Source: Bigelowiella natans CCMP2755 | Taxonomy: Eukaryota; Protista; Cercozoa | Assembly: GCA_000320545.1 (NCBI GenBank) | Contig: ADNK01001163.1 | Span: 1 to 64,000, forward strand | Reading direction: 5' to 3' | Length of the DNA: 64,000 nucleotides | Shown: positions 1 to 60,920 of the stretch, in pieces | Numbering within the stretch: position 1 is the stretch's first letter | Layout of the letters: every line of letters starts with the position of its first letter | Program-made: the position numbers and the translations under genes | The notes under the pieces: model-generated | Seen by the model: only the letters and a program-made list of their open reading frames with translations | Told to the model about the DNA's origin: nothing | Database searches by the model: none

Positions 1-643
1 GAGGGGGGGGGGGGGGGCGAGGGAGGGGGGTTTTTTCTCCTCCCCGGGGTAAATCACAACAAACAAACGCCCTTTTCGGGAAAATAAGGCTCCTCTAAAT
101 CCTCCCACCCCCACCGAGAAGAATTAACACTTTTCATAACCCGCCGGGGGTGGCTTTTCTAAACCGCGATTGGAAAATTTTTGTTCCCCACAAAAAATTT
201 TCAGGGAGCTGCGACGGGGTTTTTTTTCCCACCTGGAACCTTTTTTTTTTTTTTTGGGTGTGTGGGGGGTGGGGGGGGGGGGTGTTGGTGTGTGTTGGTC
301 TGTGTAGTACTGTAGAAAAAGTGGAGGAGGAGGATAAGAGATAAGTTGTATCTTATTTCACATCATTAAATTCACTAGTAAATGCTATCTCCCTCCTTTC
401 CTCCCTCTCTTTTTGCTTCGATCTTCTTTTAGTTTCTCCCGCTGATAAAATTAAAGCCTTTTGTTGTCTCTTTGTCTCCTTTGGTTGCTAAAACATGGAT
501 CAACATCATATGTGAACTAAACATCACAGTTGAGCATTGGAATGCGAGGAATGGCGTAGCTGCAGTACATGATGACGACGACGATGCTTTGCGAGAGTAA
601 GTAATATTGTACTAGTAGTGAAGCAGCATGGAGAATTCATGAT

Positions 644-2897: not shown

Positions 2898-3886
2898 TAT
2901 GAACTGACATAGAAGTAATAAGTACCGCAAGCATCTTGCTGCCTCCGCATCCTTAAGATCCAAAGAAAAGTTCATACGTCTGCAATCAAGTGAAAAAGTT
3001 GGGAGTGTCATTTTATGTAATTCTATGTGCATGTATACGTATAATGTTCGCTTTGTTCATTAAATTGATATTCTGATGAACTGCAAGCAGAGCCTCAATT
3101 GTAACAGAAGCTCATATAGCAGTGTTGTACAGTCTGAACTCAACGAAAGTGTGCGTAGGTTGGGACCTTGGTGGAGGTCCCTGAGAAAGGCAGGTAGGAC
3201 ACGAAGATGATGATAAACTAATGTTATTATTGCTTGAGTGTGTTCCTTCGATTTTCTTCGTAGAACACCCATTTTGTTCAAGTCGCAGATTCAAAATGTG
3301 GATCATTTCATATTTTTACCGTAAGACTGCAGAGTTCCCTTCTTTGATCGGCTACACTCCGAATAAATTCCGAGATTTTTGGATCTGCTGTGATTGTAAC
3401 ATTTCGACCGTATGCATTTGATTTGTTCTGAGCCTTGTGTGTATGTCTCTCTGGACAAATACCCATCGTATTACTTCCTAAGCCATGGAATCCAAGGCTG
3501 GGAGTTCCCACTTAATTTGAGATGTTTTAAGTACCGTATTTCTTGTTCATTTGAACAATTCTATTTTGTCTCAATAGTTTAAAGTAGGGGAAGTAGAGCG
3601 AAGACTACACAAAGCACTACATTTTTCCCACATTAATACTGAATCTTGCTATACGCTATTAGCTTGTGGTGAGGAACAGGAAAATTGTTGAAAGTACGAC
3701 AACAAAAATATGTTTATTTTAGATTAAAATGTAGGGTAATTCTACCAGTACGACAGACTTTTTAGTATTCCAGGTCTACAAATTAATTTTTGAGTGCTTC
3801 TTCGCATCCCCCTCCCAGTAGAATTACAAACAAGTCAGGTGACATTTGGAAGAATCGTTGTGCAGGGAACAGCGGAGAACGTAGGG

Positions 3887-52568: not shown

Positions 52569-53326
52569 ATTTCTTCTTCTCTGGCAATAGGGTTATGATC
52601 GAAGAGTTTTAAACACAGAATGTAATTTTCGAATTCTCGAAATGAAAAGCAAGGTTGGGTTAGGTTGGGAAAACGTATTCACTTCTCAGTAAATTCTATT
52701 TACTTCTCAATGGAACGAAATATTGCAACTGTCAAATCTTCCAATGAGATGAGGAGGACAATGTGCTTTACATGTACCTCCAAAGACAGCTGGTGAGGAG
52801 GATGCGGTAGGAAATTTCAGCACTGGTTGCGTTACGTACGAAAAATTATGGAGCAGAGATCTATCTAATTTCACATAGATTGAAGCCTCATTTTGTCTTG
52901 TCTCTAATAATAAAAATAGGTCTTTTTGCCTTTTTTGCGATGCAAGTGTAAAAAAAAAAATACATCTGAGGATGAAGAAAGCAATGTGCGGGTGCTTTCA
53001 TGGTGCGTCACGCTCTTAATCTCAAAAAGCAAGGAATCACTTTTTTCTGAAAGGCGATTTTCTCTACTGTAAGTAGCCGCTAGTGTCAGGATTCCTGACA
53101 GAGCTCGCTCGCACATTGGGAGTGCTCTCCGATGGCAGTCCACTCCACCCAACCAGCCAAGGAACCTGTGAACAAACCATTCATGCCTGAAGATTTTGAA
53201 GGAAGCCAAAGTACACGCTTTGAGTTAGTTCCCACTTTGAGTGGATGTCTGCAGCCCATGGGGGCTGCACAGCGCACGCGTGTGCGAACGTGTGTGGTTT
53301 GGTGCACCTGTCCTTCACCGTGCACG

Positions 53327-53652
53327 TGTAGCGCGTACCACTACGCGGGCACGAGGCGCTACGTGCACAAGTAGGCAGGGGGGGGGAAAGGCACGTTTGC
53401 TTCCTTTTGAAGAGTTGTGTTTATTTTTATTAAAGATTATATTTTTATTAAATCGTGCACTGCGTAATCATTCGCGAAGCTTTCGCGAATGCCGCCGCAC
53501 GTGGGGCAGCACACTTCCGGTGTGCTGCCATGAGTCCCGCCGGAACCCACGTGCCTATGCTGTATTAATATCTACGTTATCTATATTCTATATCCGCGAC
53601 AACCCCTTTGTTGTCGCACGTGACTTGTGCCCGCGTAGTGGTACGCGCTACA
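53327..53652 (-). repeat. 3' LTR, carrying its own perfect 26-bp inverted termini
   Basis: TGTAGCGCGTACCACTACGCGGGCAC at 53327-53352 and its reverse complement at 53627-53652. Confidence 0.93.
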
Positions 53653-53660
53653 CCTCCCCC
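53653..53660 (-). promoter_or_regulatory. Polypurine tract
   Basis: Minus-strand GGGGGAGG immediately upstream of the 3' LTR. Confidence 0.8.
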
Positions 53661-53703
53661 AAGTCACGTTGCTCCTTCCTTCCTTCCTTATTCCCTTAGA
53701 CCT

Positions 53704-56700
53704 TCATCGCTTTCGGAACTTCACCAACCACCAGGTAATAGATTCCTCTCTAACCTTATCTCCTTTGTCGCTTACCCAGAACTCACCTTCGTCCTTAGGT
53801 TCGTGTCCATACCAGCCCTCTGCATCAAGGTCCCCCAGGACCTTATACCAGTGCTCAAAGGGTAAGTCGGGAACAGCTAGGTAGAGTAGCTGATATTTTC
53901 CGTCCTTTATTTTCATAGCTACCCTCTCCATATTTCGTAATCCAGGGTAGCCTAGATAGACAATCTTCATGCGCCAATCGTCGTTCACCCTGACCTTATT
54001 GTTTCCATATTCCACATCGAACTTAGGTCGGGGTCCTAAACAAGGCATTGCTCGCTCCCACACAGTAGGGTTTACTTTAACATCCTCTAGGAGCTTCTCA
54101 CCGATATCATAATTCTTTAGGTGACTGATGTGGCGCAAGGTGACCCTGTTCCCATCATAGATGTAGTACTGCTTCCTCCCCTTCCTCTCGGTAACCTTTG
54201 CAACGCCACCCCAGAAGGGGTCTTGTTTATTTCTCGATCTCAGATTTACCTTGGCCCTAACATACTGTCCTTCCTTTAGAACTCGGCCATCGTACGGGAC
54301 CTTCTCGTCTTCGCTCTCGGTATCGTCGTCGTTGTCGTCGCCTTCTTCCCTCTCCTTATCCTTGATACCTCCCCCAGACGTGAAGGTGTCGTTTACTAAC
54401 CCTTGTATCTTGTCTGGTGTGGTGCTATTTATCCTGCTTAGGTTGGCCAAGGTGCGGTGGAGTCGCTCTACCTTGGAGTTGGACTGGGCATAGTATACAG
54501 GTGAGGCATCAATATTAGGGTGTGGTAGCTGTAGAAGAGAGGTCTCATTATCCACATGTAACTTCTTTGGTATCTTGTTTATGCTAACTTCATCAGGGAT
54601 AGCCTGGAGCTCAGACTCCCAGGTACGGTAGCAGTTAGTAAGCCTCTGCTTATATAAGCCTTTGTTCTTCTTAGCAACGTTGACCTTGATAATCTTTTTA
54701 ACCCAGCACTTTCCAGTGGCCACATCAACGAAGGTAAGGTAGTGATAGCCATCGTACTTATAAACATCAATTTGCACGATATCTAAGAAGTTCCTTGCTT
54801 TGATTTTCTTAGATGCACGGCTCTTGCTGGACTCCTTGGTGGCGACGCCTGCCGCCTTCAAGCTGGAGCACCTGCAGCCACGCAGGTATGTCCTTATCTC
54901 TTTTAGCTTGTAGGGCCAGTAGTAATGGTAGAGTAGAGCAGTGATATGGTTTTCTCCTACGTGTGCAGGTCCATGGGCGGTAAAGAGAAGGGCTCCCCTG
55001 GTCCGCCGTGGCACGTAGGTACGCCTAACATTATTAGTGTATACATATATCCTATCACTAAGTACCTCATGCTTGTGTTTGTATTTATCCAGGTGTTCTT
55101 GAAGGTGCTGGAGCTCCTCTGGCTCAGGCAGGAAGTCGCCGTCCTCGAAGGTAATCGCGTTAACCATAGGGGTGACCTGGGTAGGGACTTTCTTTTCGAA
55201 CAGCCTGCTGAAATAGTCAGCAAGCTGCTTGTCTCCTGGTGCGTAGACCACTGTCCTCTTGTCCCTAAACTCTTCCGTGTCCGCCCTCATAGCTGCATAC
55301 TCATCGTTAGGCGCTTCGAGCTTGCGGTCGATGCCTAGGAGGGGCTTGTGGTCAGTCATTAAGGTGAAGCTGGGCACCGACAGCAGGTAGTATCTTAGTT
55401 TCCTCTGCGCCTCAGTCATGGCTTTATACTCTCCTTTTGTAGGGCTGTACTTGGCCTCAGCTGCTGTGCAGGCCCTGCCCCACACCCGTATGATCTGCTG
55501 GTCTTGGGTAAGTACAGCAGCCATACCTAGCTTAGACCAGTCTGTCCATAGGGTAGCTGGTCTAGTAGTGTCTAGCTTAGCATTCAATAGGGTGTTGCTG
55601 CATAACTTTATTAGGTTATCGAAGTGGGCATCAAGGCCAGCCTTGGCCCACACCTTAGCGAAGCTGAGGCCTACAGAGTTCTCCTTCCGGTAAGCAGTAG
55701 TAAAAGCAGCTGCAGTCCTAGCGTAGGTAGGGGAGAACCTACGTAGTATCCAAGCTGGAGTCTGCAAGAATGACTTTAACTCCTTTGCATTCTTAGGTTT
55801 AGGGGCTTGCTGTAGTGCTGCTACTTTCTCGGGGTTTGGGGTGATGCGGCCTTGCTCCAGGTAATATCCACACCACTTGATTCTTGTAGCTAGGAATGTA
55901 CACTTCTGCAGTCTAATAGTAAAACCGAAGTGTGCAAACCTAATAAATATATTTTCCAGGAGGAAGATCTGAGCGACGACTGTGTTGGTACATATTATGT
56001 CATCATCCACATACACAAACACAAACACCCACAACACAGACGCCATCCCATCATGTGTGTATGCCCTGTAGTTCTGACTACTGAACGCATCCCCTGATAT
56101 GCTTAGGCCGTAAGGGAATACGACGAAGTGCCACTTCCTGTGCCTGCTGGAGAACGCGGTAATGGGGCGGGAGGTTTTGTGGATGGGTGTCTGCATGTAT
56201 GATTCATTTTTATCTAGGGAAGAGTAGTATTTGTATCCTATGACGTGTTCAATAACGTCATCTATCCTTGGTGTAGGTGTCTGGATCCTCTTTATTACTC
56301 GGTTGTGGCGGATGAAGTTGTGCGCCAGGCGGAAGAAAGGGTAAGTAGGTTTCTTAGCTAGCACATGTCTCACGTTCCATGGTGAGTTGCTTGGCTCTAT
56401 CTTCCCTTCCTTTGCCCATTCATTGATCTGCCACTCTATCTTTTCCCAGTCCGCTTCCGGTCGCCTATGTTCTGGGTCATTGATGATGCACTCTTCGTAT
56501 CCCTTCTTTAGCTCGATCTTTACTGGGGTAAGCTTGCTGGAGGGCTTCGTCGTCGGCTTGGTGATGTCAGAGTACTTCTCGTTTAATATTTTATTAATGT
56601 ACTTTTTGCCTTTGTCGATATCCCAATCATCAGCTGGGGGGGTCTTGTCCAGTAGCTCCGTTATCTGTCGGATGGTCTTGCCGGGGTTCTTCTTCCGTAG

Positions 56701-58677
56701 CTCGGTAGGTGTAGGTAGCTTGTTGTCCGCTAGGTCCATAAACTCTAACGCATTAACGCTTGACTCAGAGGTCCACTCGTCAAGCCGTATCATGTTCTGG
56801 CTGATGGTCCTGCCTGACTTCTTTGGCAACTTAGCAAAGTATATCTTGTGATTGTAGAATGATATGATCCCCCCTAATTTTTCTAGGGCATCCTGTCCGA
56901 GGAGTAGTTCCATGGATAAAGTCATGGCTACTCGGGTCTTGATTTGGGTCTCCGCGTCGCTGCCAGGTATCTGTAGCTTTAGCATTAGCTCACCGACGGT
57001 CTTCATGGAAGAGCTTCCGTCTGCTTGAGCATATTTACGTTCTTTCTTAGTCACTTGATCCAATAGTCCTAACCTTCTTACTGTGCTTAGGCTTATGAAG
57101 GACTTCGGCATGCTGCCACTATCCCAAAGGGCAGGTAGTTTCTTGTAGTCTCCGTAGCTGTCTTTAACTTTAACCTTGGTCATAGCAACTTTGATAGTCC
57201 TGTTAGCGTCTTCGTCATTAATGTTGCATACTCCTAAGTTCTTTATGTCGTCTAGGGTCATGGGCTTGTCTTGGTCCTGCGTTGCTGGTACTGCTGTCTT
57301 CGTCGGCGCCTGCTTAAGGTGATCTAATATTCCGTTTATCTGCTGCTGTATAGCATTGATACTGTTCTGCTTTTTGTTCTTATATTTATTGTTCTTCCCG
57401 TTGTTGCTGCCTTGCCATTTGCTGTTGTTATATCCTTGTCCTCTGCCTTTCTTTCTCTTTAACTTCTCGTAGTGTTCGTTGAGCTGCCTGATCGTCATCC
57501 TGGGTCGTCCTTCTTTCCTGTCTCTGCAGTCTTTAGCGGTGTGTTTCCCTTTACGTGAGCAGTATCCGCAACGTCGGTTACCTTCCCTGTCCTTGTACCA
57601 GTCTCGCTGCGGCTTAATAGCGTTAATGTTTCCTATGCCAGGTACCTTAGGGCTGGTAAACTTGCGGTCCTGCTCCTGCTCGCGTAGGGATATAGCCTGC
57701 ACTGCTGCCTCCATCGTGGTGTAGCCTTTCTCCGTAACGTAAGTGGATTCCTTTATCTTTAACTTGAACTCTTCAAACCTTGCCTGATCATCACCTGTGT
57801 TGTAATTAAAATCATGTAGTTCGTCGATCATATCCTGGAAGCGCGTGGCAAAGTCTCTAACAGGTTCTCTCTCATGCTGCATCATTGCTCTGTATTTTCT
57901 AATAGCCTGGGGTAGGGAGTTAGCATCCTGTTCATTTACAAAAGCCTTCATTATCGCCTCAACGTCTCGTAGCCCACTAACTGTAGTGTGTATTTTCTCT
58001 AGCTGCCTGATCCGGGTCCTGCCTGTCTCGTAAAGGTCCATGGCTTGCTTTATTATAGCTAGCCATTTGAGCTTGTCGTTTTCGGTGGGGTTAGGGGTAA
58101 AGTCGCAGAGTATACTCCTAGCGTTCTTCCACCACCTCCTTGCCTCACCTCTTTTCCCGTTGTATTTCGTTATCATAACCGGTGCTGTTTTAACAGACAT
58201 GAACTGGGTGTTCCGCTGTACCGGCTGCTGCTGCTTGACGGTGCTCTGGGTCGTCCCCCGCGAGGCGCCCAGACCCCCGTCGTTCCTAAACAAAGCTGCC
58301 CACTCTGGAGGTAAGTCTGCTTCGTAATCCATGATGTCCTGCATGATAGCTGCCCAAACATCATGTGTCTGATACTTGTATTCTATCGATACTTTCAGTT
58401 TGGCGTAGTTGCTCGCCCTGGGTCGCAAGGCTCGTAATGCCATTACGACCTTCTTGCTTTCGGCGGCCACGTCCTCGTCGTCCGCCTCGTAGAAGTTCTC
58501 CAGTGCCTCTGCTGCTGCATCTGCTTTCTTAATCCCGGGTGCTGGTCCCGGCGGTGCCTGTGGAGGTGTTCCTCCTCCTTCCTTAGCGTCCGTATCGCCC
58601 TTCCTTTCCTGTTTCTGCTCGTGCCCTTGCACGGCCTGCGAGCCAAAGTCCTGCTGTTCTTCTAGCTGCTGTGACAT
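53704..58677 (-). CDS. Gag-Pol polyprotein (Zn knuckle, protease, RT, RNase H, integrase, GPY/F-type module, C-terminal Dam-like domain)
   Basis: CGYCSRKGKHTAKDC; ALWDSGS; YVDD; TDWS...TDHKPL...ADYFSR; H-x3-H...CRC; IDVY...VDNE...VERLHRTL; 1657 aa uninterrupted. Confidence 0.96.
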   Translation of the reverse strand: MSQQLEEQQDFGSQAVQGHEQKQERKGDTDAKEGGGTPPQAPPGPAPGIKKADAAAEALENFYEADDEDVAAESKKVVMALRALRPRASNYAKLKVSIEYKYQTHDVWAAIMQDIMDYEADLPPEWAALFRNDGGLGASRGTTQSTVKQQQPVQRNTQFMSVKTAPVMITKYNGKRGEARRWWKNARSILCDFTPNPTENDKLKWLAIIKQAMDLYETGRTRIRQLEKIHTTVSGLRDVEAIMKAFVNEQDANSLPQAIRKYRAMMQHEREPVRDFATRFQDMIDELHDFNYNTGDDQARFEEFKLKIKESTYVTEKGYTTMEAAVQAISLREQEQDRKFTSPKVPGIGNINAIKPQRDWYKDREGNRRCGYCSRKGKHTAKDCRDRKEGRPRMTIRQLNEHYEKLKRKKGRGQGYNNSKWQGSNNGKNNKYKNKKQNSINAIQQQINGILDHLKQAPTKTAVPATQDQDKPMTLDDIKNLGVCNINDEDANRTIKVAMTKVKVKDSYGDYKKLPALWDSGSMPKSFISLSTVRRLGLLDQVTKKERKYAQADGSSSMKTVGELMLKLQIPGSDAETQIKTRVAMTLSMELLLGQDALEKLGGIISFYNHKIYFAKLPKKSGRTISQNMIRLDEWTSESSVNALEFMDLADNKLPTPTELRKKNPGKTIRQITELLDKTPPADDWDIDKGKKYINKILNEKYSDITKPTTKPSSKLTPVKIELKKGYEECIINDPEHRRPEADWEKIEWQINEWAKEGKIEPSNSPWNVRHVLAKKPTYPFFRLAHNFIRHNRVIKRIQTPTPRIDDVIEHVIGYKYYSSLDKNESYMQTPIHKTSRPITAFSSRHRKWHFVVFPYGLSISGDAFSSQNYRAYTHDGMASVLWVFVFVYVDDDIICTNTVVAQIFLLENIFIRFAHFGFTIRLQKCTFLATRIKWCGYYLEQGRITPNPEKVAALQQAPKPKNAKELKSFLQTPAWILRRFSPTYARTAAAFTTAYRKENSVGLSFAKVWAKAGLDAHFDNLIKLCSNTLLNAKLDTTRPATLWTDWSKLGMAAVLTQDQQIIRVWGRACTAAEAKYSPTKGEYKAMTEAQRKLRYYLLSVPSFTLMTDHKPLLGIDRKLEAPNDEYAAMRADTEEFRDKRTVVYAPGDKQLADYFSRLFEKKVPTQVTPMVNAITFEDGDFLPEPEELQHLQEHLDKYKHKHEVLSDRIYVYTNNVRRTYVPRRTRGALLFTAHGPAHVGENHITALLYHYYWPYKLKEIRTYLRGCRCSSLKAAGVATKESSKSRASKKIKARNFLDIVQIDVYKYDGYHYLTFVDVATGKCWVKKIIKVNVAKKNKGLYKQRLTNCYRTWESELQAIPDEVSINKIPKKLHVDNETSLLQLPHPNIDASPVYYAQSNSKVERLHRTLANLSRINSTTPDKIQGLVNDTFTSGGGIKDKEREEGDDNDDDTESEDEKVPYDGRVLKEGQYVRAKVNLRSRNKQDPFWGGVAKVTERKGRKQYYIYDGNRVTLRHISHLKNYDIGEKLLEDVKVNPTVWERAMPCLGPRPKFDVEYGNNKVRVNDDWRMKIVYLGYPGLRNMERVAMKIKDGKYQLLYLAVPDLPFEHWYKVLGDLDAEGWYGHEPKDEGEFWVSDKGDKVREESITWWLVKFRKR

Positions 58678-58693
58678 TGTTAGTCAAATCGTT

Positions 58694-58711
58694 TCCCGTG
58701 TGTGGAAGCCA
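58694..58711 (-). promoter_or_regulatory. Putative tRNA primer-binding site
   Basis: Minus-strand TGGCTTCCACACACGGGA lies 5 nt from the 5' LTR. Its complement ends ...GGAAG-CCA with C at the tRNA position-61 equivalent. The cognate tRNA was not identified. Confidence 0.6.
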
Positions 58712-58716
58712 AAGGT

Positions 58717-59042
58717 TGTTGCGCGTAAGGTGTTCACAGGCCGAGGCGCTACGTGCACAAGTAGGCAGGGGGGGGGAAAGGCACGTTTGCTTCCTTTTGA
58801 AGAGTTGTGTTTATTTTTATTAAAGATTATATTTTTATTAAATCGTGCACTGCGTAATCATTCGCGAAGCTTTCGCGAATGCCGCCGCACGTGGGGCAGC
58901 ACACTTCCGGTGTGCTGCCATGAGTCCCGCCGGAACCCACGTGCCTATGCTGTATTAATATCTACGTTATCTATATTCTATATCCGCGACAACCCCTTTG
59001 TTGTCGCACGTGACTTGTGCCCGCGTAGTGGTACGCGCTACA
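58717..59042 (-). repeat. 5' LTR
   Basis: 58742-59042 is identical to 53352-53652; 58717-58741 differs from 53327-53351. Confidence 0.93.
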
Positions 59043-60920
59043 ACGCTGGCACGGTGCAAAGTGCGCACGTTTTTGCCCGTGCGCTCCGTGGCCCACGGGG
59101 GCCACACAGATGCTTTGCGTCGACGCCACATTGCTGCTCTGGTGCTGGTCTGGCAGTTGCATTGCTCCACAACAGTCAGACACCAGTCTCAAGTTCCTGC
59201 GTCAGTGGGCGAACTTGCTTGCGAAACCAGCCTTGGTTTCGAGGTGGTCCTGGAGGACAGAGAAGGCCACGTGCCCTGCCTCACGTGCGTTTGACTGTTG
59301 CAGCGGCAGCGCCATCAGTGCTCACTCACGACCACACGAAGCGTGCACTCTCGCACATTGTGCAAGTTGAGTCGTGGTGGTGCGGATCGAAGTTGCGCGG
59401 CTGTGCAAGCTGACTGCGCAGCTTGCACAGCCGCACAATTGTCCGGCGATGATGGGTTTGACCACCTAGACTACAGACACAGTGTGTGCAATGTGCGTGA
59501 TTGTCTAGCTGGTGCAAGACTCCGGCAATGCGTGCGTGTGGCGTGCACAGCGCACACTTGCTTCGATTCCACGTGTGCCACTCGACTGGCCACACGTGGC
59601 ACCTGCGTCCTCACGTTGTCCCCGCTCTGCTGGCGACTGCTGAGCTGGCCCGGGACAACGTGAACGCTTCAAAGGTTGCCGACCTGTCCCCTCAAATGGC
59701 ACGCATCCGTGTGATGGCAACACTCGGTGATTTCACTTTGACACCAGCAGCGCGAGAGGGTGAAAAAAACAAAGTGTTTCGGCTGTGCAGCTCTCATCAA
59801 ATCGTTGGACCATGCACTTCTTCGAAGTTGGACAAAGCAGCACCAGAGCAGGCCAGCAGGTTCAATGCTGCACCAATGGCTTTTTGTGGTGTGGAGACCT
59901 TTTTTGAGTGCTGATCTTGTCGTTCGAACAGCAGGAAGTTCAGCACGCAGTGGGCTGTTGGCTGTGCGTGCTCTGTTCCGTGGGTTTTTTTGTTTTCGTT
60001 CCACTTCACACTGTTTTGTGCCTCAACTTGCAAACTGGCTCAACGTGATGACCGTGGCAACTCCAATTGAGCACTTCGTCCTCCATTGCGATGATTGCGT
60101 GGCCGTCACCATGGTGGCAGTGTGGCAGCATGGCAGTGAGAACACAAGGAACATCGTTGGGAACGGACCCCGGCAGTCCCACGTCCAAAGTTCTTTTCAA
60201 AGCTTGTGATTCCATGGAGCTCTGCCTGTGCACGTTGTGTTCGCTGTTTTCGTTTTTCCGAGATCTCCACACGTTGGAGCCACGTCTAGCACGTGCCTGC
60301 TGGTCGCCACGTGCCAGCGTGCCAGCGATTTGCAATGCTTCAACCTCACACTTGACAGCACGAGAGGTGTCGAACAACGTGCACGATCAGACGACCTCAA
60401 AGGAAACTTTCTCTTGCTCCGTGTGTGCAATTTCAGCCAGGTGCGGTGTGCAGAAAGGCTGGAAGGGAGTGTTTTTCAAAAGTTGGCCTTGCCACCACAG
60501 ACCAAGCACCAATCCCAGCCAGCCAGACACGTTTCCAGATGCTCCCATTTGAATTTTCCTTGCAGGTTCAGGGAAGTGTTCCGCCATGAAGCTTGTTTCT
60601 GGTGGGCTGCTTTGCCTTCTGTCAATGATTGCTGGCATTGTTGCGACGAGCGCTCGCAGCGCTCTGGCGCTGGCGCACGCAGTGCTGGAGTGGTTGGATT
60701 GGGGGAATCGAACGGAAGTGCGCTGTGCACGAGCACTTGAGAACCACACGCACAAGTGCCATGCTCTGGTGCTTGGACAGAATCATCATCGTGGTGATGA
60801 TCTGGATGCTGGAATGATGATTTTGAACAGCGTGAACCATGCATGCTAGCATGTTGACCACATCACCACGTGGCACGTGCAGTGCCAGAGTGCCATGAAA
60901 AGTCTAGAGTGTCCCAACAG
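59043..60920. other. TpA-erased island, the target region of the LTR element (continues at about 53090-53326)
   Basis: Manual count: 6 TA in about 1880 bp (5 CTAG, 1 CTAC). Confidence 0.9.

Follow-up and report, generated by a model that had tools for sequence, protein, structure and literature searches.

A full-length retrotransposon in the window (the 64,000-nt stretch of Bigelowiella natans CCMP2755 DNA analyzed here) carries, at the outer end of its 3′ long terminal repeat (LTR), a 25-nt segment that has been swapped for the reverse complement of the opposite end of the same LTR. We consider it likely (probability of about 0.8) that this swap arose in one template-switch event, a quasi-palindrome-type mutation confined to the window copy. 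On this reading, it is a private copying accident of known kind and not a new mode of LTR replication. Because genomic RNA does not include the U5 portion of a 3′ LTR, the swap is not heritable by daughter copies; it is a dead end, with no part in the life cycle of the element.

The element was recognized from its LTR pair, its single open reading frame (ORF), and the match of its reverse transcriptase (RT) to that of Ty3. Its parts are listed below by window position.

53327 to 59042, minus strand: LTR retrotransposon, full-length, Ty3/gypsy-like, 5716 nt
53327 to 53652, minus strand: 3′ LTR, 326 nt, with an aberrant outer end
58717 to 59042, minus strand: 5′ LTR, 326 nt, with the family-normal sequence
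53327 to 53351, minus strand: 25-mer swapped in at the U5 end of the 3′ LTR; it equals 53628 to 53652 in exact reverse complement and takes the place of the family's normal 25-mer
53352 to 53355, no strand assigned: CGAG, the inner microhomology (C.AG) with CTTG at 53624 to 53627; start of the proposed copied tract
53628 to 53652, minus strand: U3 nt 1 to 25 (minus strand, TGTAG...), proposed as the source whose complement was copied
53618 to 53627, no strand assigned: 10-bp stem, arm within U3 (U3 nt 26 to 35)
53653 to 53659, minus strand: polypurine tract GGGGAGG (minus strand), abutting the 3′ LTR and conserved at 311 internal/LTR junctions
53660 to 53669, no strand assigned: 10-bp stem, arm immediately upstream of the polypurine tract, within the 3′ untranslated region
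53704 to 58677, minus strand: Gag-Pol ORF, 1657 aa, uninterrupted, running from 58677 down to 53704
58694 to 58711, minus strand: candidate primer-binding site, TGG-initiated, TGGCTTCC... (minus strand), 5 nt off the 5′ LTR
53324 to 53326, no strand assigned: ACG, left copy of a 3-nt flank duplication whose right copy is at 59043 to 59045

Both LTRs are 326 nt long and have the termini TGT...ACA. The Gag-Pol ORF contains an RVT_1 domain (aa 798 to 939) followed by an RT_RNaseH domain (aa 1036 to 1118), and its best solved relative is the Ty3 RT/RNase H (E value = 6.9e-25). Downstream of the RNase H domain, we observed a weak match to Integrase_H2C2, a zinc finger (E value = 7e-4), and a weak similarity to PFV integrase (E value = 0.01). 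The order of RT, RNase H, and integrase in pol fits Ty3/gypsy elements, with weak evidence for the integrase, and domain searches of the ORF returned no match to a tyrosine recombinase. An exact pattern search of the assembly found no tRNA gene whose 3′ end matches the candidate primer-binding site, and a literature search returned nothing specific to the family of this element. Two exclusion patterns placed at the primer-binding site retrieved no tRNA read-through copies but did retrieve a variant with a 1-nt deletion.

The two LTRs are identical over 301 nt (53352 to 53652 and 58742 to 59042; a repeat-finding program gives 300), and the remaining outer 25-mer of the 3′ LTR (53327 to 53351) differs from its counterpart in the 5′ LTR (58717 to 58741) at 14 of 25 positions. 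This outer 25-mer is the exact reverse complement of the other end of its own LTR (53628 to 53652; 25/25 nt), and the 3′ LTR thus has a perfect terminal inverted repeat of 26 bp (53327 to 53352 versus 53627 to 53652). The repeat reaches 27 bp when one flanking base is counted and 30 nt at 97% identity when extended, continuing as C.AG past the 25-mer. A reading made earlier from the sequence alone (here, the sequence-only reading) had described the 301-bp identity, the reverse-complement end, the 26-bp inverted repeat, and a perfect 10-bp stem enclosing 25 nt and the polypurine tract (53618 to 53627 and 53660 to 53669), and all four descriptions proved exact. Fourteen simultaneous reverse-complement matches at the outer 25-mer cannot be due to chance.

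An imperfect inverted repeat is already present at the ends of the normal LTR. Pairing is possible at 10 of the outer 11 positions (TGTAGCGCGTA versus TGTTGCGCGTA), and farther in, CGAG (53352 to 53355) is able to pair with CTTG (53624 to 53627), one G-T pair included; the 14 mismatched positions lie between the outer and the inner pairing, with equal length on each arm. When the normal LTR is folded as single-stranded DNA, its two ends are predicted to pair, and the predicted panhandle is much stronger after the swap (−88.6 kcal/mol for the swapped LTR versus −65.9 kcal/mol for the normal LTR).

To place the window copy within its family, we searched its own assembly (91 Mb in 3736 contigs). 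The LTR query gave 40 scored matches, all 100% identical, and the alignments began at query position 26 in every match except the window's 3′ LTR. Likewise, the base preceding exact matches to the LTR core is C in all copies but that in the window. In 30 fetched loci, the normal 25-mer was carried by all 24 of the other 3′ LTRs inspected (recognized by the polypurine side next to them). Pattern counts across the genome gave 665 normal U5 junctions and 1 swapped junction, together with 311 LTRs adjacent to the polypurine tract and 628 exact U3 starts. Since 326 of the 665 normal junctions adjoin the primer site and are those of 5′ LTRs, ~339 belong to 3′ or solo LTRs. The family therefore has ~326 5′ LTRs adjacent to the primer-binding site and ~666 LTRs in all, equivalent to ~330 copies.

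These copies are strikingly uniform. The LTR pair is identical in 19 of 20 other full-length copies, and 16 of the 20 have perfect 4-bp target duplications. The 15 other copies of equal length are mostly identical over 5716 nt (pairwise difference, median of 0 and maximum of 6), many full-length copies being identical across this length with the 1657-aa ORF intact, and many contigs end inside the element. These features point to an extremely recent burst that is probably still ongoing. Apart from the 25-mer, the window copy departs from the common sequence only at base 55758, and therefore the 14 clustered differences are not the result of gradual accumulation. Matching 4-bp duplications are absent from 4 of the 20 full-length copies, all with normal LTRs (L042, L044, L045, and L052; C159, C249, C265, and C554, respectively), which suggests either that copies have exchanged sequence or that the assembly was mis-joined across the identical repeat.

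The sequence-only reading had offered two explanations for the asymmetry, namely, a programmed step (template switch or fold-back) by which the end is rebuilt in each cycle and, as a fallback, a one-off quasi-palindrome correction. It had also named fully identical LTRs in other full-length copies as a result that would refute its idea, and this is what was found; a programmed fold-back or DIRS-like step is therefore out. The census refutes the programmed step, with identical LTR pairs in 19/20 copies and 1 swapped junction versus ~665 normal ones, and supports the fallback, as the change is private and all data fit. We thus regard as extremely improbable a replication variant in which a fold-back or switch, guided by the hairpin or by something like an internal complementary region (ICR), would rebuild an asymmetric end every cycle. 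Such a variant could draw on a hairpin that is thermodynamically strong and present in all copies and on the fact that the putative copied tract begins at the stem base, but just one LTR among about 312 next to a polypurine tract is asymmetric, the clean 4-bp duplications and TG...CA ends indicate that an integrase inserted the copies in the ordinary way, and there is no tyrosine recombinase signal.

The swap might alternatively be an artifact of cloning, sequencing, or assembly, with the genome normal at this site and the inverted 25-mer having arisen in a clone, in an amplified library, or during polishing. The swapped junction is unique, quasi-palindrome correction occurs in Escherichia coli hosts too, and the assembly is fragmented, with contigs that often break inside the element and nonmatching flanks in 4/20 copies that could include mis-joins. 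However, the contig is at least 64 kb long, and the site is far from its ends and directly beside unique flanking sequence; the covering reads would therefore be anchored and could not come from other copies. Moreover, the collapse of repeats would remove a private variant rather than create one, and other private single-base variants have been kept by the assembly. On balance, we consider an artifact unlikely. A pair of insertions followed by a deletion is very improbable. It would involve an inverted copy or solo LTR starting at 53327, the first 25 nt of which became joined to an element lacking its last 25 nt; nested insertions are indeed present in the genome (e.g., at loci L007 and L012), but the breakpoints would have to be exactly symmetric to keep a 326-nt LTR, and the remainder of the inverted copy would have to be lost without trace. 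Furthermore, the right flank is not LTR sequence, and ACG is common to both flanks, as for one insertion.

In the template switch that we propose instead, the strand being synthesized through the U5 end would quit its template at 53352, prime on the C.AG microhomology, copy U3 nt 1 to 25 in complementary form (perhaps with one more base on the polypurine side), and regain its template via the 11-nt terminal homology. One such event would produce both the 14 “substitutions” and the perfect 26-bp terminal inverted repeat. The derived state is present in one copy and the ancestral state in its relatives (1 swapped versus ~665 normal ends), and the pre-existing imperfect inverted repeat (10/11 plus CGAG/CTTG) brackets the converted tract. 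In the classical model, one intra- or interstrand switch converts a near-perfect inverted repeat into a perfect one, giving a cluster of differences (PMC5453318). Some points speak against a template switch: the first jump would rely on a weak microhomology (3 of 4 bases, of which only the last is adjacent to the junction), the LTR arms are 276 nt apart, a longer distance than in textbook quasi-palindrome hotspots, and the 3-nt target duplication is accounted for only if a one-base slip is assumed.

In the standard scheme of LTR reverse transcription, the U5 end of the 3′ LTR alone can be altered at only two stages. The event may have taken place in the last step of reverse transcription, during the final plus-strand extension that finishes the 3′ LTR. 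In this case, the plus strand would switch onto the single-stranded plus-strand 5′ end, so that it would run off exactly at U3 nt 1, and the product would be a heteroduplex end with the last 11 bp still paired and with CA as the terminus. Alternatively, the event may postdate integration and have occurred within the same LTR, either at a replication fork or in the course of repair. The shortened target duplication of the window copy fits the postintegration timing slightly better, and the other accidents in the family fit timing during reverse transcription slightly better.

The flanks of the window copy share only 3 nt (ACG), versus 4 nt in other copies. If the nascent strand copied an extra base on the polypurine side and was shifted by one base when it rejoined its template, a base would be missing from the target duplication. 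This one-base slip is an assumption, and the 4/20 other copies that do not have clean duplications appear to owe this to unrelated reasons. The assembly contains no second, uninterrupted copy of either flank that would represent an empty site, and no ORF spans the insertion site as a host gene would. The host flanks carry an 8-bp inverted repeat (CACCGTGC and GCACGGTG, at 53316 to 53323 and 59050 to 59057), such that the element sits in the loop of a small target hairpin. An alignment of this inverted repeat gave no convincing extension, and because such repeats occur at about 2.4% of random sites, we take it to be probably a coincidence.

The 10-bp hairpin stem (53618 to 53627 and 53660 to 53669) is perfect and encloses the 25-mer and CCTCCCC, which is complementary to the polypurine tract. 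Folding of the stem region is far stronger than that of shuffled sequences (z score of −5.5 as RNA and −8.8 as DNA), and the element contains five perfect inverted 10-mers with short loops versus 0.2 expected, a number reached by 0.4% of shuffles. The hairpin is a fixed feature of the family, present in every copy (311 polypurine-adjacent junctions). A search of the genome for diverged relatives in which covariation of the stem could be followed found none, all copies being near-identical; an LTR on C557 that had scored as “85%” identical was rejected as a diverged relative, as it is a rearranged copy. The hairpin is real, yet it is not needed to explain the swap, although a different accident, on C3394, is located at its arms. 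The boundary of the putative copied tract coincides with the stem base because the CTTG microhomology is the end of the stem arm.

Two further LTRs in the family have undergone one-off accidents, and we count these in favor of a template switch in the window copy. A solo LTR on C3394 (about 3011 to 3532; L070:1221-1742), flanked by a clean 4-bp duplication (GGCA), contains a 196-nt insertion between LTR nt 301 and 302. This insertion is the exact reverse complement of window positions 53660 to 53855 (the other stem arm and a further 186 nt of internal sequence), and the 10-nt stem arm is found at its borders as a direct repeat. In the simplest reading, nascent plus-strand strong-stop DNA would have snapped back onto the stem arm that lies upstream of the polypurine tract and copied it. 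In the 5′ LTR on C557 (C557:2702-3001; L007:1051-1400), which BLAST scored as 85% identical, ~85 nt have been replaced by a direct copy of LTR nt ~13 to 85; this is another one-off template-jump product. It is conceivable, although we hold it to be doubtful, that the architecture of the family, with a 10-bp hairpin that encloses the polypurine tract and the start of U3 together with panhandle-forming LTR ends, makes reverse transcription unusually prone to inverted switches, the window copy and C3394 then representing at least two independent accidents. If so, these two copies would be integrated “fossils” of fold-back errors made by a retrotransposon reverse transcriptase, and such errors would offer a route for the terminal inverted repeats of LTRs to lengthen.

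The swap resembles the quasi-palindrome or short-range template-switch mutations described by the Ripley model and by the four-point model of Loytynoja and Goldman (PMC5453318), in which the reverse complement of nearby sequence replaces a stretch of DNA and an imperfect inverted repeat is made perfect, leaving a cluster of substitutions (here, 14 in 25 nt) and possibly a 1-nt indel. It differs from them in that its arms, located at either end of an LTR, are separated by 276 nt, more than in typical hotspots, and in that the reverse transcriptase of the element, instead of a replicative polymerase, could have been responsible. The element itself is similar to Ty3/gypsy elements (Metaviridae) in its TG...CA LTRs with short imperfect terminal inverted repeats, its 4-bp target duplications, the polypurine tract beside the 3′ LTR, the order of RT-RNase H and integrase, and the identity of its closest solved relative, the Ty3 RT. 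In contrast to Ty3/gypsy elements, its integrase core is too divergent for the Pfam rve model, and its LTR is unusually rich in perfect palindromes.

The likeness to DIRS and Ngaro elements, which have an internal complementary region, is superficial and consists of a terminal sequence complementary to other element sequence. Those elements encode a tyrosine recombinase, of which there is no signal here, where an integrase-type similarity is found instead; they make no target duplications, whereas 4-bp duplications flank 16/20 copies of this family; and their unusual repeat layout is present in every copy, whereas the asymmetric end studied here is found in 1 of about 666 LTRs. Inverted chimeras are also products of snap-back (hairpin) synthesis by reverse transcriptases and strand-displacing polymerases. 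In this process, a nascent 3′ end primes on a single strand of like sense and copies it in inverted orientation. Snap-back synthesis would fit the C3394 insertion and may represent one possible timing for the window event, although the products discussed here differ in having been fixed in the genome after integration.

Attributing the swap to a copying accident removes the tempting false lead of a new replication mode. It also leaves the window copy as a clean, datable example of a multinucleotide template-switch mutation, the ancestral state of which is exactly known, the family being so young. Dating by LTR divergence would read this single event as 14 substitutions, and the copy would be badly over-aged. 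More generally, the window copy hints that palindromes at LTR ends can drive template-switch errors.

The LTR holds three further perfect or near-perfect palindromes (53469 to 53491, 53505 to 53529, and 53596 to 53617), which are the same in the 5′ LTR; one of them is 23 nt long and centered on AAGCTT. Many ACGTG cores are also found in the LTR, and these cores and the palindromes may be transcription factor sites or structural elements. Upstream of the stem is a purine-rich run of 26 nt (AAGGGAATAAGGAAGG... on the minus strand; 53670 to 53699), distinct from the short polypurine tract directly beside the LTR.
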